A stretch of DNA of 49,592 nt from Trichosphaerium sp. ATCC 40318 (taxonomy: Eukaryota; Protista; Tubulinea), in the NCBI GenBank assembly GCA_038496445.1, contig JALMLS010000269.1, positions 1 to 49,592 on the forward strand, in the 5' to 3' direction. A program made the translations under genes and the position numbers. This document shows, in pieces, positions 1,687 to 36,808 of the stretch (within the stretch, counting starts at the first letter, position 1; each line of letters starts with the position of its first letter). A model generated the notes under the pieces. That model searched no databases. It was not told where the DNA came from and worked only from the letters and a program-made list of their open reading frames with translations.

Positions 1687-4296
1687 CTACTAAATGTTAG
1701 CCACAATAAAATAAAACAAGAACTTGCCTGAGTGAACTTGCCAGCTTTACCACCTTGTCCTCTTTTACGTGCACCTTGTGTATTCTTTTTCTTTTTGCCT
1801 CCTTTAATTTGAGAGTGTTGAATGTACTTCCTTGGTACATTCTTTTCATCAACAAGCAAGTCTTCAACCTCTTGGCTTACCTTGCCCTACAAACACCTTG
1901 AGTATGTCACAATAATGATTGTCACAAACATACCGAAATAACAACTTCAATAGCATTGCTACCTTTAGCAGCATCTGGGTTTTTTCGGACAGTGGAACTA
2001 GCTGCAAATTGTGATCCAAATTCTTTTGACATTTGCTTTGGTGTAAGCCCAAACGCTTGTAGATTCTGAATGCGTGTCATATGCCTACGGCCGCCTTGGA
2101 TGACTTCTGTAATTACAATAATTGGCTTCACAGCACCCTTCCTATAAACTAATTAGCACGTTGCAAACAATCATGGTGAGAGCTGTACTTTATTTGACGG
2201 AACCCGTCAATTGTTATAGAATGGCATGGAGAAAGCTTTGTCTTGAACCTATGTCCGCAGTCAACGTGAGGGACAGGTACAAGTAGCGTACTTTGTAATG
2301 AACTGACGTTTTTCCATAGCAGTGTTGGCTTTGTCTCTCAGCTGAAGTGCTTTGCATAAATCTTCATCTAGTGTAACAAATTGCTTCTTCTGAGGATGCT
2401 GCAAGTTTTCTTTCTTGATATAGTCCCAAAGCCTGTCTTGACACACCTTCAATGTGAATACTTCTTTTGTACTACAATGAAAGTGAGTTAGTCAGGAACA
2501 ACTAAACAGCAAAGCGAAAATGTCACAAACAAAAAAACACTGAGCGCTGCACGTACACGTCAACATCAGTGCCAACAAATAGGAAAGCAAACGGTTTAGG
2601 GAATCGCCAAAGTTCGACAATCGTCAACCTACACACTTGTAACTAACAACATACACGCAAGATCAAAAAAAAATAGAAGAAAATTAGTATAAACGTGTGG
2701 CATACTTGGATGGGCTGACTTCCTCCTCTACTTCTTGTTCTTCAACCACAAAATCTTTGTAGTCAGGGTGATTGACATTGATCGTTTTAATATTGATAAC
2801 CACCTCGTTCGTTGTTGAGTCTTCAACAGGCTTTTCTTCAGTTTTGATTAGTCTATCCTCTGCCATCTGTGCAACGAATACGCCTATTTTACCAAAAGAA
2901 CTCTTCTTGATGTCCAATGGGAATTTCTTCTTCTCATTTGCTTTCATGTGGTGACCATATAACGCATTGACAGAGATGGGTAAGTCCTCTTGAGAAAGTT
3001 CCTGCTTAATAGCCAAGAAAAAGCACCGGCGGAATTCGGCATCCATCATTTTTTGAACATCCTCCGCTTTGATTTCCCCTTGTGTTTCAGGTTCTTCCAC
3101 ATCATCAACTGTCTCTTCATCATCTTCAGCGGCATCAGTCGCTTTATCTACTGCTCATAAGCTAAGACAATTGACGAAAAAATACATGGTAAACAACAAA
3201 AAAAGAATTTGCGACACAGCGCTGTTCTCAGTTGCAACAAGTCAAATGTGTTACCTTCACCGTCTTGGCCGTTACCTTCAGCATCTTGGGTTTCACCTTC
3301 GACAGGAGCAGCGTCTGCGTCCTTATTTTCATCCTCTGCAGGCTTGTCTGTAAAAACAAGATAAATATGACAAAACAGGGAAACTAGCTTACCTTTTTTC
3401 TGCACTACAGGCGCTGGAGGTGTAGGTGGTTTTGTCTTGCTACCGTACATCCTTACAGAGATTAGCAAAAGACAGTTGGTACACTACGCACCAAAGATGG
3501 TCTCTGTAAAAGTGGAGTACTTTCAAGCCTTTCCCACGCATGCCTTCTTTACGGACGTGATCCAAATTGCACAATGTCTTACCTACAGCAATAGGTTTCC
3601 TTGTAAAAAAAAAAATAAGCGCTGACGTCAGAATGGAGCACGAGGAAATACGAGCGTCATTTGCAATGACAACGGCGAAAAACAAGAAGAAAAAAAAAAT
3701 GTAACGTGAAATCAACTATAAAAGTAGTACTAAAATACGTACTCGTGTCCCTCGATTGTAACACTCCAGGTCTCACCAGCTTCAAACTCGCCAAAACCCT
3801 CAATGCCGCCTTCTGGTACTTCGACGCCAGCAAGCATCAAATCTACGCGAAACTGCGTCAGAATTACAGTTATCTAACAACAACAAATAAAAACGTACCG
3901 GCGCCTTTGAGAATGAACGCAAACACATGCTCTTTTATTACCATAGTCTTCAAAAACACAGGGAGTTTCCAAGCGGCGTACACTAAACAAAAAATTATTA
4001 GTTTGGGGTTTTTTTTTTTTTTTTTTTTTTGACTTTAACAAAACCGAAATAAACGCGCCTGTAGGCACCAAATCGCCTCTAGTTATCTCCACGAACAACG
4101 GTTCGTCGTTAACACAGTAAATGGTTGATTTATCCTTCTGACCGATACGAGTTATTGTTCCCTTCTTCGGGAACAACGCGTCGATGGCAGCTGGGTCGAG
4201 GGACGGGTAGCATTCTAAAATTTTTGCTTTTATTCTTCTCTTCTCTGAGCTCTTCAAATTAGATTGCTTAGACGAATCAAACCCCTTCTTCCACAT
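1687..4296 (-). CDS. EIF2D: Translation initiation factor eIF2D (ligatin), multi-exon
   Basis: N-terminal MWKKGF..LKSSEKRRIK..VPTVYAAWKLP..KGADLMLAG (DUF1947/PUA); SWIB-like LWDYIKKENL; C-terminal SUI1-like RRHMTRIQNLQAFGL..FAASSTV. The 3' end is 1687 if a GC-AG intron at 1690-1727 is spliced, otherwise 1638. Confidence 0.9.
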
Positions 4297-4935
4297 GATG
4301 TCGTGTTGTATACGAGCTGAATGAACGAGAAAGAACAAGAAAAAATCGGTACGCCAACGCGGATAAAAAACATAGAAATTTTGTCACAAAAGAATGCCTA
4401 TTACCTCTATTTCGCCAAAAAGTTCAAAATTGGCGGCGCAACCGCCATTGAAGGACGCGAAGAACCAAAACGCTACTGCCGAACCACGACTTGGTTTTTA
4501 GCGAGTTCAAATAAGCCACCCGCTACGCAACCGTATCGCAGGGCTTCGTGAGAGATAGTGTTTGTATTGGTACTCAATATGGTCTATGATTGTAATGGCG
4601 TTACCATACATCGCATAGCGATTGGAGAGGTACATACCCAGTGCCAAATACCAACGAAGTGCCTACCCTCCACAAAAACGTCAAAGGCGACCAACATTTA
4701 ACAAAAAGGATACAGTCCGGTTCGTTTCCCCGCTATACATACCCTACACCTCCTCTGTTTAGTGCTGAAGAGCAGCCACGCAACGTCAATGTTGGTTGTC
4801 TATGCTCGGCGTGCAACCGCTAGTGGCGAACGACGTGAGTTGTCTGTGCTTGCTTGGTTAACGAGAAAGGGCTCGCGATGATAATCTGTTTTTTGTGATT
4901 GGGACATGCACAATCGTTCTTTTAATCAGTTGTAT

Positions 4936-15783: not shown

Positions 15784-16993
15784 ATGAGAATGAACGGATT
15801 ATTTCTTGCTTTCTTATGTCTATGCGCACTTGTATCACTAGTATCAGCTCATGGACGTCTTACAGTACCTGAAACAAGGGACGTACAAAACGGTAGACGT
15901 AGAGACCAACAACATGCCCCAGTATTCCTTCAAAACGGCGATTGGGTATCAGGACACGTGTGCAGAGATCTTCCTTTTGTCGGCTCGACAGCAACTTACC
16001 AAGCCGGAGGAACTTACTCAACAGAATGGTTCTTCGAAGCTAATCATCCTGGAGATTGCTTTTTCTACCTCTCCTTCGACAATGAACAAACATGGGCTAA
16101 AATCGCCGAGATTCGCGACTGCCACCTTATAAGCGGATGGGATATGACAATACCTTCATGGGTTCCTAGCGGTCCTGCAGTACTTCGTTGGGAATGGTAT
16201 GCTCTTCAACAAGTCATCAATGTTGAGCACTATCTTCAATGTGCCGACATCACGATTACAGGAGGAAACACAGGAGCTGTTGCTTGGACCCCAGTCGTCA
16301 CTATTCCTGGTCACCTTCCTTTGGATGCCAGTGGTTACAGACTTGTATACGATGTAAACGCACCTTTCTTCTTCACTGGACCTGCAGTAGCACAATACAT
16401 TTCTGGCGGTACAACACCACCACCGCCACCACCTACAATGGGAACTCCACCAACAATGGGAAGTACTCCACCTCCACCACCAACAATGGGAAGCACTCCA
16501 CCACCTCCACCAACAATGGGAAGTACACCTACACCATCTGGTAACGCTTTCTGTCCAACAATTTCAAACGTTGAAATCAACAGTACGTAGCGCTTTCTCT
16601 TTTTTGTTTTTCTGCCTTTATTCTTGAAATTTATTTCGTTTAGACTGGGGTAGTGGTATGAACGTCGTTGTCTACCTCACAGCACCAACAAGTGGCGCAC
16701 CAATTACATCTGTCAGAGTAAGACAAGTATCTCCAGGTGGCGCTACAACAGACAACTGTTGGTCATCAACTGGCGCAGTCACCTCTGCATCTGCAACTGA
16801 AACTGGCACTAAATTCGTACGTTCTTTTTTCTAAAACAACTTCTTTTTGAATTCCACTGACTTTGTTCTTTAGATCAGCTTGTACAATCCTTGGGTAGCA
16901 GGTAGTGCGATTCCTATACTTGGTTGCGCATGGAGTGTTGGTGACAACAACATTGCCGTATCTGTAATTGAAGTAAACGGCAATGCTTGTTAG
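15784..16993 (+). CDS. Lytic polysaccharide monooxygenase-like protein + P/T linker + CBM2-like module
   Basis: Signal peptide ends VSA|H (His-brace H1); second His in ANHPG; LRWEW; EHYLQCADI (axial Tyr); C-terminal module C..WGSG....VNGNAC over 3 exons. Confidence 0.85.
16417..16530 (+). repeat. Coding minisatellite (PPTMGST) in LPMO linker
   Basis: Four copies of ccaacaatggga(agt)ac-like units. Confidence 0.85.
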
Positions 16994-17355: not shown

Positions 17356-20300
17356 TTACAACTTTGGCAATTGAAGCCTAAAGTTGTACAGCGATAGTTC
17401 ACGTGTCATTTGTCGTTTCGTTTTTTTTAAAGTCGTACCTTTTTTCTTAATGAACGCATTGTACAAGTTTTTCAGTTGCCATTTCACGTGCGTTGTAGCT
17501 TCTTTGAATATATCACGAGATGATAATGTAACGTCACGCATATTTGATTTTATTCTTGACGTTATATCTCTATTAAATTGTATGAAAGAATCTGATTTGT
17601 TATCATCTATAAAAGTTCTGAATATTCTCTTTGCTGCTCCACATACACTTGCTTTGTCTTTATAAGCTGTTTGATAGTATGTATTAACCTGCATGAGAAA
17701 GTCTAGAAGAGATTCTTGACGCTTGGTAGCGAGGAATGCCCGGAATTTGTTATAAAGGTCTTTGTTCTGTACGAGTTTGCTTAAATGGAACTTTAGCAGT
17801 TTTGGCTGAGGAGAACTTGACTTTTTTCTTTGTCTCTGTGCGCTCTTCGCTTCACTAATCTGTAATAGTTGTAGTAAAGATTCTTGATTATAAGCGATTG
17901 TAGCAAAGACAGTAATATTGCCGAGATATTCGAGGAGTTTCTTGTTTGACTTGAACTTGTATGAAACTTTTTGGCATTTTAGAATATCACTGAACACCAA
18001 GCCTAGGCAAGACATTTTTTCCCAATTCACTATTTTACCTTCATTGCGAATATAATCAGGTTCTTCTTCAATAACCGTAAGATCGCTCAGAATAATTCCT
18101 ACAGCAGTGTGAATGCACGCCAAAATAATGAAGTGAACAGAAAAAGCATACTTTGGTATGGAACGCAGGGAGGTTTCAAGTCTTTTAGCGTATTCCTATA
18201 AACTAAAGACGAATGATCTTGTGTCATTAGTTGATAGCACGTGTTCAATATAGTAAGGTACTTCCCAGGAATGTCCTTTAAAAAAATTCACGTGATAAGC
18301 ACAAAACCAAAGCGTGATTAAAAAATGAACTTACTTTCCAAAGTTTTTGAAGTCCTTGTACCACAGGCTTATTTATTCCAGTGTAAACCTGCATTAAGCC
18401 TTCGTACGAATAAGTTGGGCTTATGAATGAACGCATTAATAAGCGTACCTTGAAAGTTCTGTAGTTGGCGTAAAGTGTCCATCAAAGATATGAACTTCAT
18501 TATTTTTGTAGTTCTGTTTCTTCTATTTGTCGATAGAACAATCTCACTGGCCACCCAATTGCTCATTTGATCGAATCTTCTCATAATACTAATCCAATTT
18601 AATATGACAACAGAAAGGTCCAAAAGTTAAAGTTTACGCTCGTATGGCTTTGCGCCCAGTGCTTTCTGCAGAAGCAATAGATTCTTCTTCGCAGTTATTA
18701 TTATTGTATCGATAATAGTCTGGAATTTTGACTTCCTAGTACTTATCAGCAACGTTAGCGTAAGTGATGTTTATACCCTGAATAGCGAATGGTCTATTAG
18801 TGTCATGTGATGAGCTAGAGTTGTCGTGTCTTCATTTAAAAAGTTAAACTTTTTTGATACATGAGGTTCAGGTATTTCTATATTCCAGTCCATCTCGGTC
18901 TTATAAAGTTCTTGTTGATTACTCTAAAATCAATAGAGTTTAATTTACGAATAAAACAAGTATACGCTTACTGTACAATACATGAGAATTTTGTTCACAT
19001 GTGACGCTTCCTTCTAAATACAGCAGTTAAATAAAAACTAGCAAAAAACTACATCGGAAGTGGGAAGGAGTTTCATCGATGTTTGTTGCTACGTACGCTA
19101 TTTTCATTTGCTAAAAGTTCGTAAAATAGAAGCATAGCGCCATCAACCTTTTCCCACTGCGAAATCGCCCGTAGCGTGAAGTATTTTAGTTCGATCCATT
19201 TTTTTAGAACATTTATTATTCTGTAAACAATCACGGTTAGCGCCTCTTGGTATCACGTGGATAAAGCTTTTTTGTTAGACGTTAAAAAAAAAAGAGTTGT
19301 ACCGAAGTTGTACAGCTTTAACTTCTTGTTCTCCCTTAGCACGTTTGAGAAGCTTTGAAGGATAGCGGTAGCTATAAGAATCAAGGGGTAAATCGTACTC
19401 AAAATACTGCAAAAAGAAGTTCAAAACAAAAAAGACAAGGTGAGGATACTGATCAAACAATCTATGTAAGAAATCTACAGGCGAAATAAAATAGTCATGA
19501 GTTAGCGAGAATGTTGTTATATACTTCATATCTAAGCGTATATTATGACAAAACAGCGTCTAAAAATAAAGCTAACCTTGGTATTCACTTTGGTTGGCTA
19601 ATCTTCCTATTAAATCATCTACAGAAGCTGTTTGAACAGCTATACTATTCCGAGACATAGCATATCGTTTCCTCTCCATTAATGAAGGAGAGGCGCTACT
19701 GTTTGTCCAATCTAGGAGAAAATTATAACTACAAAAAAAAACACCACGTGTTTCGCGCTAATAGTTTTACACGATCAACCATACCCTCCGGAACATCAGT
19801 TAAAACATCCTCGCGGCTTCCAGTATATGACTTTATTGAAGTCATTGAGCTGCTTCCAGATAAAAACCCTCCACGCAAAGACCCGTTACTGCTCCCTGGC
19901 GTGAGGCTTAAATTAGGAATCAAGTCTATGAATAGCAAATAAGTTTTAATACTTCACAACCGTGACTTAGCTTCACCTACCTTTTATTTCGTTGAAATCA
20001 GGTCTCCCGTCTGGTTTCTGCTTCCAGCATCGTTTTATAAAGCGTTTCCAATCTCTGGGACAGTGTTTAGATATTTCTGGTCTTCTACCTTTTGAAATCT
20101 AGCCAGCCTATAAGTCACGTGATTGTCATGAACAAGTACCAAGTGAGTCCACGAGAATGAGCTGAAATCACTATAAGGTGGGCTTTTCGCCCACACCTCA
20201 GCCATGAGAATACCAAAAGCATAGACGTCAACTGCTGGTGCAAAAAGTACAGGTTCATTTGCTGTCTTTTGTAGCGTTTCGGGTGGCATACATCCAAAGT

Positions 20301-27123: not shown

Positions 27124-27740
27124 CATTGGTTTCTTTTTTTTGTAAAAGCTGTTCAAAAACAAGCAAACGACGAAAAAATAAACAGCTTTTTGGGTACAAC
27201 TTTTGGTACCACGTTGATATTTAAATTAAGGATAACCTTGTTAAAAATCCATGCATGGAGTTGTAGCAACATTCGAATTTCTCTTTCCGTGTCGAACAAA
27301 TTGGAGCTACTGTAATGTCAGGCTCTGTACATTAATCATGTAGTTAGTTGTTAGTATAGTTTACGTTCGTTACCTGTTCGTAACCTCACATGTAAGTTAC
27401 ATTTCACTTTCATAATCCCTCAAACATCCTGATATCGACTCTGCTGTTCTTCTTTCTTGTGATTGTGTTTCCCGAAATCTGATTTGCTACTTAGAGTACT
27501 TGCAAACATCATAGAGGCTTACCAACCGCAAAAGGGCTTTCTCAATAAAAGCTCACAGATTGTGAAATAGATTGACAACGTTACCTAATTTATAAAACGA
27601 GCTTTCAAGAACACGTGATGCGCCCCTTACTTACTTTTTCTGTTATATTCTATGTTCTATGTTTGACAACTCAAGCTAACAGTACGCTCCAACAACCGAA
27701 AAAAAAATGACAATTTCACTTTTTAATCATTTCTGCATAG

Positions 27741-28495
27741 CTAAACGCAGTGTGGCTAGTACTACTGCTGTTTGTGAAAATGAGAAACGTATTGATCTTC
27801 CAAACGGAAGTAAGTACGTGGGGTGCTTTAAAGAAGACAAATTTGACGGTTTTGGCGTGTACACGTGGTCTGATGGTAAATTCTACCATGGAGCTTGGAA
27901 AAGCGGAGAACGCAACGGTTATGGCGTACTCACGTGGAAAACAGGCATGAGGTATGATGGAGAGTGGTTAGAAGGAAAATACCATGGTAAAGGATCTGTG
28001 ATTTACCCAGACGGCGAAAGTATAGAAGGTTATTGGGAACGAGGAGAATACAAGGGGAAAAAAAAAGAGCAAGAGGTAAGGGAAAAAAACACCCTTTCTA
28101 AGTTTGGAATTGCTTTAAACGCTATTTAGGATATTACTGGCGCTAACGACATAGGTAGTGATGGATATGATAGTACTCTGAAACTGTGGGTAAGCGTTTT
28201 ATCAGAGTTATCACCAAATCAACAACAGTTTGTTTACAATTTGTAGGTTTTAGGTCCACTTTTCTTGTTGATGTTTGTGTTCGGTTTGATGACTTTAAGA
28301 TCGTTTTTTATTCGAAGCAATAGAGTAAGTATTCCCAACGCTTCTCCTAAAACAGTACAGCCTATAAAGGAAGTGAAAAATGAGTCAAGTTTAAGTGATT
28401 CTAAGATCGAACCAGTTACTGAAAAACCAGATCTTACACATCTCTTCGAGACTTATGATTATATTCAAAAATTTCATAGTCTTAAAAATGAATAA
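27741..28495 (+). CDS. MORN-repeat protein (5' exons unresolved)
   Basis: Four MORN repeats Y.G.W..G...G.G..TW.DG in ORF 27707-28129. Confidence 0.8.
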
Positions 28496-31320: not shown

Positions 31321-34300
31321 ATGGCAGAATCACAGAGTGACAAATACCAACGTTTAGATAAGGAAGAACCAACCAACATCCATCTCCCCATAATTGAAAT
31401 TGTGTTTTCTTTTGCAGGTTTGTAATGCTTGCTAAGCAAATAGTTGACAAAGTTTAGCACGAAATGGATACAATGAAGTTGTATCAATCTTACTCAAAGC
31501 CAACGCCAATGTTGATGCTGTTGATAACTATGGAAACACAGCTTTAATATGTGCAGGTAACATGATATGATGAGATACAACATGTACATATCTCATTCTA
31601 CTATTTAGCACAAAAAGGATACAATGAAGTTGTATCAATCTTACTCAAAGCCAACGCCAATGTTGATGCTGTTGATAACTATGGAAAGACAGCTTTAATA
31701 TGTGCAGGTAACATGATATGATGAGATACAACATGTACATATCTCATTCTACTATTTAGCACTAAATGGACACAATAAGGTTGTATCAATCTTACTCAAA
31801 GACAATGCCAATATTGATGCTGTTGATAAATATGGATGCACATCTTTAATATGGGCAGGTAACATGATATGATGAGATACAACATGTACATATCTCATTC
31901 TACTATTTAGCACAATATGGACACAATGAAGTTGTATCAATCTTACTCAAAGCCAACGCCAATGTTGATGCTGTTGATAACTATGGAAACACAGCTTTAA
32001 TATGTGCAGGTAACATGATATGATGAGATACAACATGTACATACCTCATTCTACTATTTAGCACAAAATGGACACAATGAAGTTGTATCAATCTTACTCA
32101 ACGCCAACGCCAATGTTGATGCTGTTGATAAACATGGAAAGACAGCTTTAATATATGCAGGTAACATGATATGATGAGATACAACGTGTACATATCTCAT
32201 TCTACTATTTAGCACGAAAAGGATACAATGAAGTTGTATCAATCTTACTCAAAGCCAACGCCAATGTTGATGCTGTTGATGAAAATGGATATACAGCTTT
32301 AATATGTGCAGGTAACATGATATGATGAGATACAACATGTACATATCTCATTCTACTATTTAGCACGAAATGGACACAATGAAGTTGTATCAATCTTACG
32401 CAAAGCCAACGCCAATGTTGATGCTGTTGATAACTATGGAAAGACAGCTTTAATTAATGCAGGTAACATGATATGATGAGATACAACATGTACATATCTC
32501 ATTCTACTATTTAGCACTAAATGGACACAATAAGGTTGTATCAATCTTACTCAAAGACAATGCCAATATTGATGCTGTTGATAAATATGGATGCACATCT
32601 TTAATATGGGCAGGTAACATGATATGATGAGATACAACATGTACATATCTCATTCTACTATTTAGCACGAAATGGACACAATGAAGTTGTATCAATCTTA
32701 CTCAAAGCCAACGCCAATGTTGATGCTGTTGATAAATATGGAAAGACAGCTTTAATATGTGCAGGTAACATGATATGATGAGATACAACATGTACATACC
32801 TCATTCTACTATTTAGCACAAAATGGACACAATGAAGTTGTATCAATCTTACTCAAAGCCAACGCCAATGTTGATGCTGTTGATAAATATGGAAACACAG
32901 CTTTAATATGTGCAGGTAACATGATATGATGAGATACAACATGTACATATCTCATTCTACTATTTAGCACAAAAAGGATACAATGAAGTTGTATCAATCT
33001 TACTCAAAGCCAACGCCAATGTTGATGCTGTTGATGAAAATGGATATACAGCTTTAATATGTGCAGGTAACATGATATGATGAGATACAACATGTACATA
33101 TCTCATTCTACTATTTAGCACAAAAAGGATACAATGAAGTTGTATCAATCTTACTCAAAGCCAACGCCAATGTTGATGCTGTTGATGAAAATAGATATAC
33201 ATCTTTAATATGTGCAGGTAACATGATATGATGAGATACAACATGTACATACCTCATTCTACTATTTAGCACGAAAAGGAAACAATGAAGTTGTATCAAT
33301 CTTACTCAACGCCAACGCCAATGTTGATGCTGTTGATAAATATGGAAACACAGCTTTAATATGGGCAGGTAACATGATATGATGAGATACAACGTGTACA
33401 TATCTCATTCTACTATTTAGCACAAGAAGGACACAATGAAGTTGTATCAATCTTACTTAATGCCAACGCCAAAATTGATATTGTTGATGAAGATGGAAAT
33501 ACAGCTTTAATATATGCAGGTAACATGATATGATGAGATACAACATGTACATATCTCATTCTACTATGTAGCACAAAATGGATACAATGAAGTTGTATCA
33601 ATCTTACTCAAAGCCAACGCCAATGTTGATGATGTTGATGAATATGGAAATACAGCTTTAATGTGTGCAGGTAACATGATATGATGAGATACAACATGTA
33701 CATATCTCATTCTACTATTTAGCAATAAATGGACACAATGAAGTTGTATCAATCTTACTCAAAGCCAACGCCAATGTTGATGCTGTTGATAAAAATAGAA
33801 AGACAGCTTTAATATGTGCAGGTAACATGATATGATGAGATACAACATGTACATATCTCATTCTACTATTTAGCACGAAATGGACACAATGAAGTTGTAT
33901 CAATCTTACTCAAAGCCAACGCCAATGTTGATGCTGTTGATAAATATGGAAACACAGCTTTAATATGTGCAGGTAACATGATATGATGAGATACAACATG
34001 TACATATCTCATTCTACTATTTAGCACGAAAAGGAAACAATGAAGTTGTATCAATCTTACTCAACGCCAACGCCAATGTTGATGCTGTTGATAAAGATGG
34101 AAAGACAGCTTTAATTAATGCAGGTAACATGATATGATGAGATACAACATGTACATATCTCATTCTACTATTTAGCAATAAATGGACACAATGAAGTTGT
34201 ATCAATCTTATTCAAAGCCAACGCCAATGTTGATGCTGTTGATGAACATGGAAATACAGCTTTGATTTATGCAGGTAATATCGCAAATGAGATAAAAACT

Positions 34301-36808
34301 ATGTTTATTTACTATCATTTGAGATTTTGACTATATGTCAATGTTAATGTTGAAATTAATCAAACCTAATGCAAATAATATTGATACTATTGATGAAAGT
34401 GAAACCAACAAGAATTCAGGTATTACATTACAAAAAATTTGGTGAAATAATAGCTAACACTGTAAGTAGTAGTAACTCCATGCCAAAGAAAGTGGCAAGA
34501 CTTTATGTTCATTTTAATTAGAGAAGTGGTATCAAATACACCCTCAGCTGTTGAAAAATTCGTAACTTTCTTAAAATACTGTCCAAGTGGTAAACAATGC
34601 CATCCACTGTGGAGATACTGTAAAAAGCACTATTCGCAAAATGTCGACATAGAGGGGAGAAAACAGTTTGAAGAATGGCTTCACCGTTTGGTACACTTTG
34701 CTGAATACCAATACCTTAAACTAACCATTACAACGTTTAGCCAACGCGGTATTATTTCAAACTGGCAATGGAAAAAGGTATTTGTCATTTAATTTGTTCC
34801 GCATGCGATCCCAAAGTTGTACTGTCTCCGGTACGATATCTTCACTGCTAGCATCTACACTACAAACAACATTCTTTTTCTACAGGAATTCTGGAAACAA
34901 GATGGGCAATCAATGCAAGGTATTCTGCATGATATGCCCAATGATGCCTGGGTCAATAACAGTCAAGATGAATCCTTAAAAGAAGAGTGTACTGAAGGTA
35001 AGAAGCGTGGTGATATAATACTAAAAAAAGTTTTCAAAAGGATTAAAAGGTGAAAACGCGTGGAGCCTGAATCCGCGATTGTATTTTGCAAATAATTGGG
35101 ATAGATCTAACACGTGCGTTCAATTACTTTTTATTAGTTCTAATATTACAACAAGAGGCATTGTTGCAAAGGCGACACACTACAAAACACTGAATCTGCT
35201 TGATGACAACGACAAAGTGGCAGTCAGAGAATTCAACATCCTCAAACAGGAGATGTCAAAACTACATGGCTGTGACAATTACGAAATCATTGAAGCGACT
35301 CTCGTTTGTAATGACATCTTGACAGAAAACTTTGGTCGAATCAACGAAATACTGACGCACAGACATCAGTACGGTTGCTCCACACTTCATAGGCATTTCC
35401 GTGATTCTAAACATGCATCTATTAGAGAACTGCCCAAGTTGTTTAAAAAACAAAATTGGCAAACTGATAGTACCTACAAGGAATACAAAGAGACTGTGTA
35501 CCAAAAGTGCAACGCCCTCACTGATTTTAATGATTGTTATACTGAAAAAAAAGATAAGGTAATGTTCTTGGTACTCTTGCACTACAAACATTTTATTTAG
35601 TTACCAGTGATATTGATGGTCCATGGAACAACCGAAGAAGCAGCTAAGAGTATTGCAAAGGCTGGTTTTGGAACTGTGAGTTCTTTAGACGCTGGTTACT
35701 ATGGTCAAGGGATATACTTCACTGTACGTTATTACCCAATTATTGCAGGTGGTCAATATTCATTTTCGCCAATAGAGAAGCATAAAGTATGCCGCTTCAT
35801 ATGATTTATCAGGAAGAACTGCAAAAACACTGGTTTTAAGTCTTGTTACTCCTGGGAACGTTTATCCGGTAAGCAAACAATAATATTGATGTGGATATTC
35901 TTTACTTACTTGATGATAAAAAGCATGATCCCCTTGTATGTAAAAAAACTGATGAGGGTACCAAAACCATGAATGAAAGCTTGCACGGAAGGCCAATAAA
36001 ACCAGGCTACCAAAGTCATTATGCATTGGTAGACCACGCTGGTAAACTTCTGCCAGCAGATAAACTTAAAGATGCAGTATACGATGAGCTGGTAGTGGCA
36101 CAAGGTACAGCAATACAATTGAAAAATGTGATTAAATTCTCAAGCACTATTTTAGATACTCAAGCTGTTGCTCGGTACATCATCAAAGTTACAAACAAAC
36201 ATAAAAAAAAACGTAAAACTTCAAAAACCAAGAAAGGTAATAAAAAGACAAAGAAAGAGAAAGATCAAGCTTCAGAAGTAGATACTGATGGCTCAGCTGG
36301 CGAGCTATCTGATGATGAACTATCTGATTCTGACGACACTTTTATTTCTAACCGGTATAATTTTATAGTATCTTTTAAACTTAAGTTTTGTACTAGAAAA
36401 CTGTGGGCTGCCCATGATGATTCAACTGATGATGAACAACCAAGTTATAATTATGCCAATCTCAAACTAGAATTACAAGAAGCAAACAGCGAGGTAGAGA
36501 AACTGAAGAAGAGCCTGGCTGAACTTCATCGGAATTCACAGAAAATGAATGCAAACAAAGAACAGCACATTACTGAATTGACTGAAAGAATCAAAGACCT
36601 CACAGGAAGCAATAACACCCTAAAGCTAGACAATATCAACCTCACAAGAAGCAACAACACCCTAAATCTAGACAATATCAACCTCAAAGAAAGCGTCAAC
36701 AACCTCTCCGAAGGTGTCCAAGATCTAATGCGAGACAACACTAGCCTAAAGGAGAAGAATGCTATTCAACTGGCAAAAATAGCTCTCTTTGAAAGTACAG
36801 CAAAGTAA
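31321..36808 (+). CDS. Ankyrin-repeat (19 one-exon repeats) - helical region - PARP-like ADP-ribosyltransferase - basic/acidic tract - coiled coil
   Basis: Exon 1 31321-31417; 19 phase-1 exons of 99 nt from 31458 to 34274, all open; ART motifs VHGT, AGYYGQGIYFT..KYAASY, SLVTPGNVYP, GYQSHY, YDELVV (H-Y-E); C-terminal heptads. Confidence 0.88.
31458..34274 (+). repeat. 151-bp exon+intron tandem array (19 exons, 18 introns)
   Basis: Exon starts at 31458+151n through 34176; intron gtaacatgatatgatgagatacaacatgtacatatctcattctactatttag nearly invariant. Confidence 0.98.
36597..36686 (+). repeat. 42-bp coding tandem duplication (two heptads) in coiled coil
   Basis: LTGSNNTLKLDNIN / LTRSNNTLNLDNIN. 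Confidence 0.85.

Follow-up and report, generated by a model that had tools for sequence, protein, structure and literature searches.

A gene of Trichosphaerium sp. ATCC 40318 joining 19 ankyrin exons with seven hypervariable codons to a PARP-family domain: a candidate fast-diversifying recognition enzyme

The window analyzed here, a stretch of 49,592 nucleotides from Trichosphaerium sp. ATCC 40318, carries on its forward strand one intact, spliced, lineage-restricted gene, which we rebuilt as 32 exons at 31321-36808, encoding 1308 amino acids from ATG to TAA. All 31 introns are 40-57 nt long and bounded by GT..AG, and no stop occurs across the 1308 codons. The encoded parts are, in order, an N-terminal cap, 19 ankyrin repeats, a C-terminal cap, a 140-aa linker, a PARP domain, a basic/acidic tract and a coiled coil; the first two thirds of the protein are an ankyrin solenoid of some 20 repeats, and the C-terminal third is the PARP-family part. 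An earlier note on this DNA had proposed a fusion of an ankyrin array with a PARP-like ADP-ribosyltransferase, and the single intact gene model bears this out; the outer coordinates of the note coincide with its ATG and TAA. A tblastn search of both strands gave no ankyrin or PARP match in the rest of the window.

The array is a single tandem repeat at 31453-34278 (period 151, 18.7 copies, 93% matches; Tandem Repeats Finder). Cutting it at splice signals recovered the 19 ankyrin exons that the earlier note had described, each of exactly 99 nt (33 codons) and with the translated consensus AQNGHNEVVSILLKANANVDAVDKYGNTALICA; they span 31458..34274 on the forward strand, the first at 31458-31556, then one every 151 nt, and the last at 34176-34274. 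AG and GT flank the exons throughout and the phase is 1-1 in 19/19, while the 18 internal introns, of phase 1 and 52 nt each, are near-identical and each interrupts the structural beta-turn/helix-1 unit of an ankyrin repeat. A single exon matches the Pfam family Ank (PF00023) with 23.0 bits (cut-off 21.1) and E 9e-5, and the best solved matches to the unit are consensus/designed ankyrin proteins, which align to it without gaps; ankyrin-1/2 (4rlv) is also among the solved matches. On average, two units are 91% identical in nucleotide sequence and 80% in amino-acid sequence, and the conserved beta-turn Gly26 is replaced by Arg in two of the 19 units. The sequences of units 3 and 8 (identical), those of units 6 and 11 (1 nt different) and a drop in unit-vs-unit mismatches at lag 5 point to a probable recent block duplication within the array.

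A 151-bp tandem repeat whose copies are 91-93% identical is difficult for an assembler, and the array length or unit order could, in principle, be wrong because a shorter or different repeat was mis-assembled; RNA and metagenome contigs connect units that are not neighbours (e.g., 33668>34174 and 32160>33731), and contig depth is zero in three 183-bp bins of the array. Yet we regard such an artefact as extremely improbable. Specifically, the period is exact throughout, 18 of the 19 units are distinct, and the duplicated blocks are imperfect copies, unlike the product of a mis-join. The odd joints stem from de Bruijn contigs of related sequences (90-99% alike), which are no guide to the locus, and the per-codon pattern described below would survive a different copy number.

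The array is capped on both sides. Exon 1 (31321..31417, forward strand) consists of the ATG plus 32 codons, is preceded by in-frame stops, and ends in a helix-like 'IVFSFA' that replaces TALIxA and caps the first repeat on its N-terminal side. It is followed by a 40-nt GT..AG intron. In one RNA contig (X2 record 7), which spans 31321-31417, the loose end past 31417 continues like the beginning of an ankyrin exon; a close relative therefore splices this intron. On the other side, a degenerate C-terminal capping ankyrin exon (DFDYMSMLMLKLIKPNANNIDTIDESETNKNS; 34324..34419, forward strand) keeps phase 1-1, a continuous frame and GT..AG borders, and on direct reading of the sequence resembles the ...ILLKANANVDAVD... 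core of the repeat units. The conserved linker of about 140 aa follows at 34467..34997 on the same strand in three exons (34467-34690, 34741-34830 and 34886-34997), whose borders we adjusted to RNA contigs (one piece begins at 34467, and joints lie at 34682>34740 and 34830>34887). It contains Cys and His, carries the motifs CPSGKxC...LW..C, LPTRxYFKLAMEKGIC and FWKQDxQxMxGI..D.P.DAW, and is 52% identical to the homologue P0002 over its extent; it matched no Pfam family, and its Atlas score (0.68) is uninformative.

The PARP-family catalytic domain, assigned by Pfam, profile and the AF2 fold of a homologue, occupies six forward-strand exons within 35041..36104 (35041-35113, 35156-35368, 35426-35558, 35601-35723, 35776-35868 and 35924-36104). 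The exon at 36156..36354, on the same strand and with RNA-joined introns, encodes the last PARP beta-strand (DTQAVARYIIKV), a Lys-rich tract (KHKKKRKTSKTKKGNKKTKKEK) that resembles, and may be, a nuclear localisation signal, and an acidic Ser/Asp tract; the basic/acidic tract is also found in P0002. The terminal exon (36397..36808, forward strand) encodes a predicted coiled coil of about 125 aa and the TAA stop. It holds an internal repeat of 42 bp x 2.3 (36597-36691), gives weak coiled-coil-type Pfam matches (TSC22, TPR_MLP1_2 and CEP63), is matched by X1 contigs over 36409-36755 with zero mismatches, and its coiled-coil region is kept in P0002 through the last residues.

Most of the introns outside the array are seen spliced in RNA contigs of related organisms. 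RNA joints confirm the PARP introns 35369-35425, 35559-35600 and 35724-35775 and the downstream introns 36105-36155 and 36355-36396; the 35868|35924 junction is seen as an RNA loose end and in record 4, and the 76-nt spacing in X2 record 10 agrees with introns 34998-35040 and 35114-35155. Spliced junctions between ankyrin exons appear as loose ends of RNA contigs at 32160, 33972 and 32060. No RNA contig of this exact gene was seen to run from the array into the PARP exons, the depth at 34249-34431 being about 1. A homologous transcript contig (L001) has at least seven ankyrin repeats, different in sequence from those of the array, upstream of a PARP part, with an N-gap separating the two, and P0007 combines ankyrin repeats and PARP within one predicted protein.

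Sequence comparisons and a modelled fold identify the C-terminal part as a predicted PARP-family catalytic domain with H-Y-E triad residues. A 41-aa exon alone reaches 18.2 bits (E 0.0019) against Pfam PARP (PF00644; curated cut-off 26.7), and the homologues P0001 and P0002, which are 52-54% identical to the gene over the PARP domain, reach 36.5 bits (E 4.6e-9) and 30.9 bits (E 2.4e-7), respectively. The family profile matched PARP12 first (3e-8), then PARP10, ZAP and PARP4, with PARP15 also matched. With a probability of 1.0, an E of 3e-9 and a target TM of 0.60-0.68, the AF2 model of a homologue's PARP domain (pLDDT 58 overall, 70-84 in the core) matches the folds of PARP10, tankyrase 1/2 and PARP12. 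The domain carries the family signature PGYQSHY and the catalytic-type residues His 979 (HGT), Tyr 1008 (GQGIYFT) and Glu 1098 (DELVV), of which the His and the Tyr align to those of PARP12. The Glu is invariant in the family alignment and directly precedes the strand aligned to PARP12 FVIFEKHQ; from this adjacency, and from E988 of PARP1, we take it to be the third triad position. These residues suggest catalytic activity; in some members of the family, the triad His is replaced by Gln.

Almost all variation among the ankyrin units falls on seven of the 33 codons, with residue sets R/Q/L/I at position 2, N/K/Y/E at 3, H/Y/N at 5, K/N/E at 24, Y/H/N/D at 25, N/K/C/Y at 27 and C/W/Y/N at 32; the codon table agrees exactly with the seven positions and residue sets of the earlier note. 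Entropy is 1.3-1.8 bits at these positions vs. 0.74 or less at all others, and the 19 units carry 17 distinct seven-residue signatures. The variable sites are enriched in Tyr, Asn, His, Lys, Trp and Arg, a composition typical of binding surfaces. The introns are near-invariant, as had been claimed, with 3/52 segregating sites and a pi of 0.012, vs. 30/99 segregating sites in the exons (Fisher p 3.5e-4), although part of the intron conservation could come from splicing constraint in very short introns. At the seven codons piN is 0.30, vs. a piS of 0.052, and omega is about 3-6 (p 0.008 to 8e-8, depending on counting), while at the other 26 (scaffold) codons it is near 1, in agreement with the predominance of non-synonymous change that the note had reported. 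Specifically, minimal counting by hand from the codon table gave at least 32 non-synonymous vs. 8 synonymous substitutions, and the conservative minimal-count test gave a hypervariable omega of 2.8 (p 0.008) and a 6.9-fold excess of the hypervariable codons over synonymous plus intron sites (p 3e-7). Counting on a tree, which overstates independent events because the repeats are related by duplication and recombination, gave 56.5 vs. 7.5; 37.5 of the non-synonymous changes were at hypervariable codons (omega about 6 against the 7.5 synonymous overall, p 8e-8), 6-fold above scaffold non-synonymous change (p 8e-12). A regional mutation or conversion effect is excluded by the alternation of hypervariable and invariant codons, which interleave codon by codon while the adjoining introns are the most conserved DNA.

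It is important to note that scaffold omega is near 1 and not well below it, so part of the signal could reflect recent relaxed evolution. Taken further, the whole pattern might be the neutral by-product of a very recent tandem amplification with relaxed constraint on exposed residues, in a gene that is perhaps decaying, and the Gly26 replacements and the signs of block duplication are in line with this. However, neutral sites cannot surpass the neutral rate, and the seven codons exceed synonymous variation 3-6x and adjacent-intron variation 7-26x. Further, frame, splice sites and scaffold are kept in 19/19 exons, the reading frame is open to its end, and the residues at the variable sites are those of binding surfaces. 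We consider a neutral origin quite improbable, and diversifying selection acting on a recognition surface is well supported.

The likely position of this surface follows from the alignment to designed ankyrin proteins (DARPins), in which the hypervariable sites fall on DARPin positions 2, 3, 5, 10, 13, 14 and 16. The DARPin library of Binz et al. 2003 reportedly includes positions 2, 3, 5, 13, 14, 26 and 33. The mapping to the DARPin-randomised face put forward in the earlier note holds, therefore, for five of the seven sites (2, 3, 5, 13 and 14) but not for positions 10 and 16, which vary here and lie outside the library, whereas positions 33 and 26 are not variable in the natural array. Judging from the canonical ankyrin structure, the seven codons would form a beta-turn and inner-helix (concave) recognition surface. 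As in DARPins, the consensus scaffold is fixed and diversity is placed at beta-turn and helix-1 positions; in contrast to DARPins, the scaffold reads TALIxA rather than TPLHLA, there are 19 repeats rather than 2-3, and the array is a natural gene with an enzyme attached.

Alternatively, the gene may encode a housekeeping, tankyrase-like scaffold enzyme whose solenoid recruits several endogenous partners, the differences among repeats reflecting specialisation to self ligands; the 24-repeat domain of ankyrin-B/R, with different self ligands along its groove, would be the model. The combination of ankyrin repeats, PARP and an oligomerisation module parallels tankyrase in its logic (PMC9688111), ankyrin-1/2 is among the solved matches to the repeat, the basic, nuclear-localisation-like tract is conserved in P0002, and the gene is intact with transcribed relatives. 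However, old specialised repeats should have diverged at synonymous and intron sites as well, which is not what the piS and intron pi given above, far below piN, show. The distribution is also very narrow, the part of the protein that precedes the catalytic core having only two matches among 1.84 billion representatives, and the different repeats of the L001 homologue speak against a conserved set of endogenous partners. We judge this alternative rather unlikely.

We favor instead an account, which we think probable on balance, in which a diversified ankyrin groove captures ligands for modification by the PARP domain; the gene is a strong candidate for a fast-diversifying recognition enzyme, as far as its sequence can tell. 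Unequal crossing-over and gene conversion among the 151-bp units would drive the evolution of the array, and since all units are symmetric phase-1 exons, the frame is preserved whichever unit is gained, lost or swapped. Selection would keep amino-acid novelty on the binding face, and the resulting long, chemically varied groove could capture one or more protein ligands. The PARP domain, oligomerised via the coiled coil, would then ADP-ribosylate the captured ligand or itself, with substrate recruitment as in tankyrase ankyrin clusters. The earlier note had envisaged an NAD-consuming effector, which appears less likely than substrate-directed ADP-ribosylation for a PARP with H-Y-E and an ankyrin platform, as opposed to a TIR/SIR2-type NADase; target recruitment is thus favored over NAD depletion.

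What the enzyme would recognize is best guessed at from the selection signature and from the occurrence of this PARP subfamily at the C-terminus of Roc-COR and receptor-like proteins, because of which a role in biotic or genetic conflict is our leading functional guess. The relatives come from marine transcriptome-type contigs and a marine metagenome, which makes the protist origin named in the earlier note plausible, and in environmental relatives the same PARP module is fused to Roc-COR, FG-GAP/EGF and TSP1. The partner might be a virus, an intracellular bacterium or a selfish element, or the system might serve non-self recognition; the immune receptor, giant-virus defence and allorecognition roles suggested earlier are likewise conjectural. 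Non-self receptors with hypervariable ankyrin faces (PMC4986451), receptor arrays with one exon per repeat (PMC3341825) and PARPs engaged in host-virus conflict (PMC4038475) provide precedents.

A further, very doubtful reading is that the array is a built-in diversity generator, combinatorial exon skipping or somatic/clonal unequal recombination varying the ankyrin surfaces per cell. With 19 symmetric phase-1 cassettes and identical splice sites such a device could work, and a unicellular marine eukaryote would then possess an anticipatory recognition system of the Dscam or VLR kind whose output is ADP-ribosylation. The contigs that join non-adjacent units fit this reading, and paralogues plus assembler collapse explain them equally well.

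Among known systems, tankyrase (TNKS1/2, PARP5a/b) shares with the gene an ankyrin region N-terminal to a PARP domain with the H-Y-E triad and a self-association module, and its catalytic domains are among the best fold matches, as good as PARP10/PARP12. However, no tankyrase is among the sequence-profile matches at E 0.01 or better, the domain being nearer PARP12, PARP10, ZAP and PARP4. The tankyrase SAM domain found no match in the linker exons or in full-length P0002, with all coding sequence from array to PARP accounted for; a coiled coil after the PARP domain stands in its place. Further, the 19 near-identical repeats contrast with the five diverged ankyrin repeat clusters of tankyrase, and the sparse, fast-changing family with the strong conservation of tankyrases, which only animals and choanoflagellates have (PMC9688111). 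Tankyrase identity was rejected on the missing SAM domain and the uniform repeats, the same differences that the earlier note had drawn. Among solved proteins, the catalytic domain is closest in sequence to the vertebrate mono-ADP-ribosylating PARPs (PARP12, ZAP/PARP13, PARP10/14/15), an antiviral clade under recurrent positive selection in host-virus conflict (PMC4038475). These likewise couple a target-recognition module to a PARP domain, but use CCCH zinc fingers, WWE and macrodomains where the gene uses ankyrins, and have an H-Y-I/L/Y triad where the third residue here is Glu.

The nearest analogues are the fungal NLR ankyrin arrays and the brown-algal exon-per-repeat receptors. Fungal NLR/HNWD-type receptors have ANK, TPR and WD repeats of high internal conservation, with variation at binding codons far above the synonymous level (Dyrka et al. 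2014; PMC4986451), and the gene shares their strong inter-repeat similarity, binding-face selection, and signs of concerted evolution and block duplication. The likeness claimed earlier stands for this pattern of repeat evolution but not for the architecture: no NACHT/NB-ARC NTPase was matched by Pfam in the non-repeat exons or in P0001/P0002, the linker is too short to hold one, and NLR identity was rejected on these grounds. Also in contrast to the fungal receptors, the effector is a C-terminal PARP rather than an N-terminal HET, HeLo or PNP, the repeats are single exons separated by introns, their amino-acid identity lies just below the 85% criterion of PMC4986451, and RIP is not implicated. 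The candidate receptors of Ectocarpus (ROCO-LRR and NB-ARC-TPR), which evolve by exon shuffling (Zambounis et al. 2012, PMC3341825; PMC11378527), share with the gene one repeat per fixed-length, symmetric-phase exon, in-frame gain, loss and swap, hypervariable ligand-binding positions and a marine eukaryotic host. The inactivated or inverted repeat exons that are a hallmark of shuffling in Ectocarpus are absent from the 52-nt near-identical array introns, and the gene has no Roc-COR or NB-ARC, even though Roc-COR is elsewhere a fusion partner of related PARP domains. Compared with the brown-algal receptors, the array here is one of ankyrin repeats and its output is a PARP domain.

The earlier note had described an ankyrin-repeat array in the gene at 31321-36808 (+), and this array is indeed present in the sequence. 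Tandem Repeats Finder reports a single strong, indel-free array with a period of 151 bp (18.7 copies at 93% matches) spanning 31453-34278; cutting this array at its splice signals yields 19 exons of exactly 99 nt each, starting with 31458-31556 and following every 151 nt up to 34176-34274; and one array exon alone passes the Pfam Ank threshold, while among solved structures it matches consensus and designed ankyrin proteins best, in gap-free alignments. All array exons have AG directly before them and GT directly after them, each of the 18 internal introns measures 52 nt, and the exons are all in phase 1 at both ends, the split codon being invariably GCA (Ala). The translated unit consensus is AQNGHNEVVSILLKANANVDAVDKYGNTALICA. 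Units 3 and 8 (exons 31760-31858 and 32515-32613) are identical across all 151 nt and represent the most divergent unit type (ALNGHNKVVSILLKDNANIDAVDKYGCTSLIWA), at 10-21 nt from each other unit, with introns matching the consensus intron; no RNA contig covered these two units at ≥90% likeness. The exact 24-nt core of the repeat exon had no match in metagenome contigs, and a 9-bp stem in the 52-nt intron was dropped as a meaningful hairpin, being no better than shuffles (z -0.38).

Seven of the 33 codons of the unit (2, 3, 5, 24, 25, 27 and 32) carry three to four residues apiece, with an entropy of 1.3-1.8 bits vs. at most 0.74 bits for all other array codons, 14 of which are nucleotide-invariant, and 17 distinct seven-residue signatures occur among the 19 units. 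Nonsynonymous diversity (piN, Nei-Gojobori) is 0.30 at the seven codons vs. a synonymous value of 0.052 for the whole exon, and the diversity of the 18 introns is 0.012, with 3 of 52 sites segregating. dN/dS across the 19 units, which the earlier note had proposed to check per codon, gave omega values of 2.8 to ~6 for the seven codons. The higher value was obtained by counting changes on a maximum-likelihood unit tree (37.5 nonsynonymous ones in the seven codons vs. 7.5 synonymous ones in the whole exon, p 8e-8), and such tree counts are inflated by recombination between repeats. Hence, a second test was based on the minimum number of mutations explaining the codons seen, and it gave the lower value (19 nonsynonymous vs. 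8 synonymous, p 0.008); by the same count, the seven codons exceed synonymous plus intron sites 6.9-fold (p 3e-7). The other 26 codons have an omega of ~1. Neutral drift following a recent amplification would be an improbable source of this pattern, given that neutral sites are unable to vary several-fold faster than adjacent silent sites and that the gene is fully intact.

Along the unit, D23 is fixed, 24-25 are variable, G26 is nearly fixed, 27 is variable, T28 is fixed and 32 is variable; across the unit border, A33 and A1 are fixed, 2-3 are variable, G4 is fixed and 5 is variable, and this mosaic adjoins the introns, where the array's DNA is most conserved. Because variable and invariant codons alternate singly beside these introns, the mosaic cannot stem from mutation or gene conversion that differs by region, whereas it can stem from selection at the level of individual residues.

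The gap-free alignment to designed ankyrins (GHNEVVSILLKANANVDAVDKYGNTAL vs. GHLEIVEVLLKxGADVNAxDxxGxTPL) sets the register, and places the seven hypervariable sites at positions 13, 14, 16, 2, 3, 5 and 10 in DARPin numbering. The DARPin library of Binz et al. from 2003 reportedly has six fully randomised positions, including 2, 3, 5, 13 and 14, and five of the six (these same five) are hypervariable here; DARPin positions 33 and 26 are not variable in the array. The claim that the variable sites map "largely" to the DARPin-randomised face is thus fair, with five of the seven sites coinciding and positions 10 and 16 not. The randomised positions make up the concave binding surface of DARPins (PMC8229355). 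Position 10 should face as 13 and 14 do, since it lies one helical turn ahead of them on the inner helix, and position 16 would be the start of the outer helix.

Alternatively, the array could be mis-assembled and its copy number wrong. However, 18 of the 19 units are distinct, and block duplication is imperfect (no differences between units 3 and 8, one base between 6 and 11, and fifteen between 7 and 12); further, the per-codon pattern would outlast any change in copy number. The exon chain was assembled by hand in two revisions, and the final gene model opens with an ATG at 31321, closes with a TAA at 36806-36808 and comprises 32 exons; it encodes 1308 aa with no internal stop, all 31 introns being 40-57 nt long with GT..AG borders. 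A first model with linker introns of 104, 108 and 88 nt was rejected on the basis of RNA joints and homologue alignment, and these introns were replaced by introns of 47, 50, 55, 43 and 42 nt plus an additional one of 57 nt.

The locus was compared with RNA assemblies from three related organisms (A, B and C) and with contigs from one marine metagenome run. Since most of these contigs are only 90-99% alike to the locus, they represent paralogues or close relatives; pieces from organism A are identical to 36409-36755. Joints in the RNA contigs confirm the introns 35369-35425, 35559-35600, 35724-35775, 36105-36155 and 36355-36396, a loose end together with record 4 confirms the junction between 35868 and 35924, and contigs support the acceptor at 34467 and the introns 34691-34740 and 34831-34885. 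In one contig, exactly 76 nt separate 34994 from 35156, as predicted after removal of introns 34998-35040 and 35114-35155, and loose ends attest splicing from exon 1 to an ankyrin exon and from ankyrin exon to ankyrin exon. No single contig of A, B, C or the metagenome run was seen to lead from the array of this exact gene into its PARP exons. The predicted ankyrin-PARP fusion has good indirect support, which comes from the continuous frame and phases, from L001, a homologue's transcript contig in which at least seven ankyrin repeats and a 10-N scaffold gap are followed by the linker-PARP-coiled-coil protein P0002, and from P0007, a relative with Ank and PARP domains within one predicted protein. 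The L001 repeats are register-shifted and much more diverged, and their entropy profile is uninformative on same-site variability. Four of the 12 introns 3' of the array (35114-35155, 42 nt; 35369-35425, 57 nt; 36105-36155, 51 nt; and 36355-36396, 42 nt) are divisible by three and contain no in-frame stop, so that the last 305 codons read as one ORF; retention of these introns would add 14-19 residues without breaking the protein, and they may reflect chance or be a source of isoforms.

A conserved 140-aa linker separates the array from the PARP domain; it has no match to a known family in Pfam, and its Atlas feature score (0.68) is uninformative. For the 140-aa stretch upstream of the catalytic core, a search of 1.84 billion cluster representatives gave just two relatives. 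Over its own whole length, linker and coiled coil included, P0002 shares 52% identity with the gene, and both P0002 and the homologue P0001 pass the Pfam PARP threshold. A seven-member family profile matched the solved structures of PARP12 (E 3e-8), PARP10, ZAP, PARP4 and PARP15, and an AlphaFold model of modest confidence (mean pLDDT 58, core 70-84) matches the catalytic domains of PARP10, tankyrase and PARP12 with probability 1.0. Because HGT contributes its His and GIYFT its Tyr at the aligned catalytic His and Tyr positions, and an invariant Glu (DELVV) occupies the third triad position, the domain has, as judged by alignment, the same H-Y-E arrangement as PARP1, PARP2 and tankyrase. Three members of the PARP-family alignment (P0003, P0005 and P0006) have Gln for the catalytic His (QGT for HGT) and keep the Tyr and Glu; these may be paralogues with altered activity or inactive ones. 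The PARP domain is followed by a lysine-rich tract (KHKKKRK...), which may serve as a nuclear localisation signal or as a patch that binds nucleic acid or PAR, then by an acidic Ser/Asp tract and ~125 residues of coiled-coil character. The coiled-coil exon contains a 42-bp x 2.3 tandem repeat at 36597-36691 (NNTLKLDNINL motif), and organism C contigs are without 131 nt of this exon (joint 36545>36677); therefore, coiled-coil length differs among relatives.

When contigs from metagenomes and metatranscriptomes were scanned for the two signature motifs of the family, 143 relatives were recovered. In the long ORFs among them, all on environmental contigs, a PGYQSHY-type PARP is C-terminal on Roc-COR GTPases (L028, L053 and L021), on FG-GAP/EGF receptor-like proteins (L024, L010 and L012) and on one TSP1-repeat protein (L009), the receptor-like and Roc-COR proteins being up to 2298 aa long. 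Given these arrangements, the PARP subfamily behaves as a portable output module on varied sensor or switch domains, and the proteins together suggest a PARP-output signalling family that is seemingly undescribed. Viral contigs scanned with the PARP family profile gave one weak match (59 residues, E 9e-6), which is no evidence for a viral homologue or decoy.

Elsewhere in the window, the very AT-rich start carries 133-, 152- and 45-bp tandem repeats around a recurring CCGCTTCGCT / GCGCTTCGCTTCA motif at 188-828 (on to ~920), and no telomeric repeat was seen in the first 1000 bases. The exons at 2684-4338 (-) encode an eIF2D-type translation factor (Pre-PUA E 2.8e-18, eIF2D winged helix E 3.2e-18), which is a housekeeping neighbour. 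A 268-aa ORF at 15784-16590 (+) has chitin-binding type-4/LPMO-like proteins of early-diverging fungi as its nearest Atlas clusters (score 0.94) and includes a 30-bp proline/threonine-rich tandem repeat (16447-16536); an RGS-domain ORF lies at 17356-18123 (-; E 1.8e-13), and a MORN-repeat ORF at 27707-28129 (+; E 3.7e-18), on the same strand as the ankyrin-PARP gene and 3 kb upstream of it.

Taken together, the gene encodes an ankyrin solenoid of ~20 repeats whose presumptive binding face shows excess amino-acid change at particular residues. A PARP domain with catalytic residues is attached to this solenoid, with a coiled coil after it. We propose that the array would grow, shrink and reshuffle via unequal exchange of 151-bp units, with the frame always kept, and that selection would retain novelty on the binding face; the ankyrin groove would bind protein ligands, and the PARP domain, oligomerised, would ADP-ribosylate the captured ligands or itself. 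A regulatory, tankyrase-like scaffold with endogenous partners is possible, but it would leave unexplained why introns and synonymous sites are far more uniform than the seven codons. For the output of the proposed sensor, we prefer target-directed ADP-ribosylation, as in tankyrase, over the NAD depletion put forward in the earlier note, because PARP-family enzymes work by target modification and an ankyrin platform would recruit substrates. Our best guess is that the gene would act in conflict, be it with viruses, intracellular bacteria, selfish elements or non-self. This guess is based on the signature of selection, a distribution that is both narrow and patchy, the modularity of the family, and precedents in fungi (PMC4986451), brown algae (PMC3341825) and vertebrate PARPs (PMC4038475).

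The gene differs from tankyrase, as had been claimed, in having no SAM domain and uniform repeats; in addition, its PARP domain appears by sequence profile to be nearer to PARP12 and PARP10. The proposed likeness to fungal NLR/HNWD receptors holds for the mode of repeat evolution, which is common to both, but not for the architecture: without an NTPase, the gene is not an NLR. The exon-per-repeat layout is shared with the ROCO-LRR and NB-ARC-TPR genes of Ectocarpus, although these have intronic dead exons and the ankyrin-PARP gene does not. We found no published description, in the open-access literature, of a gene in which a hypervariable ankyrin array and a PARP domain are directly joined. 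Little is known of immune-like recognition in unicellular eukaryotes, and the accepted signature of diversifying receptors, a homogenised repeat scaffold with hypervariable contact residues, has hitherto been seen mainly on NTPase-switch proteins, i.e., NLRs of fungi, plants and animals and ROCO/NB-ARC proteins of brown algae. Its presence here directly on a PARP enzyme, without an NTPase switch, suggests a simpler "bind and ADP-ribosylate" logic, and would carry over to a distant marine lineage the association of PARPs with genetic conflict that is known from vertebrates. The gene also offers a concrete, testable object, with seven defined positions per repeat, one defined catalytic Glu and sister architectures (Roc-COR-PARP and EGF/FG-GAP-PARP), and, as a natural analogue of a DARPin library, could reveal which scaffold positions nature varies. 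Known systems already combine a homogenised repeat scaffold with contact residues that are diversified; what is new is the PARP output, the lack of a switch domain and the lineage.
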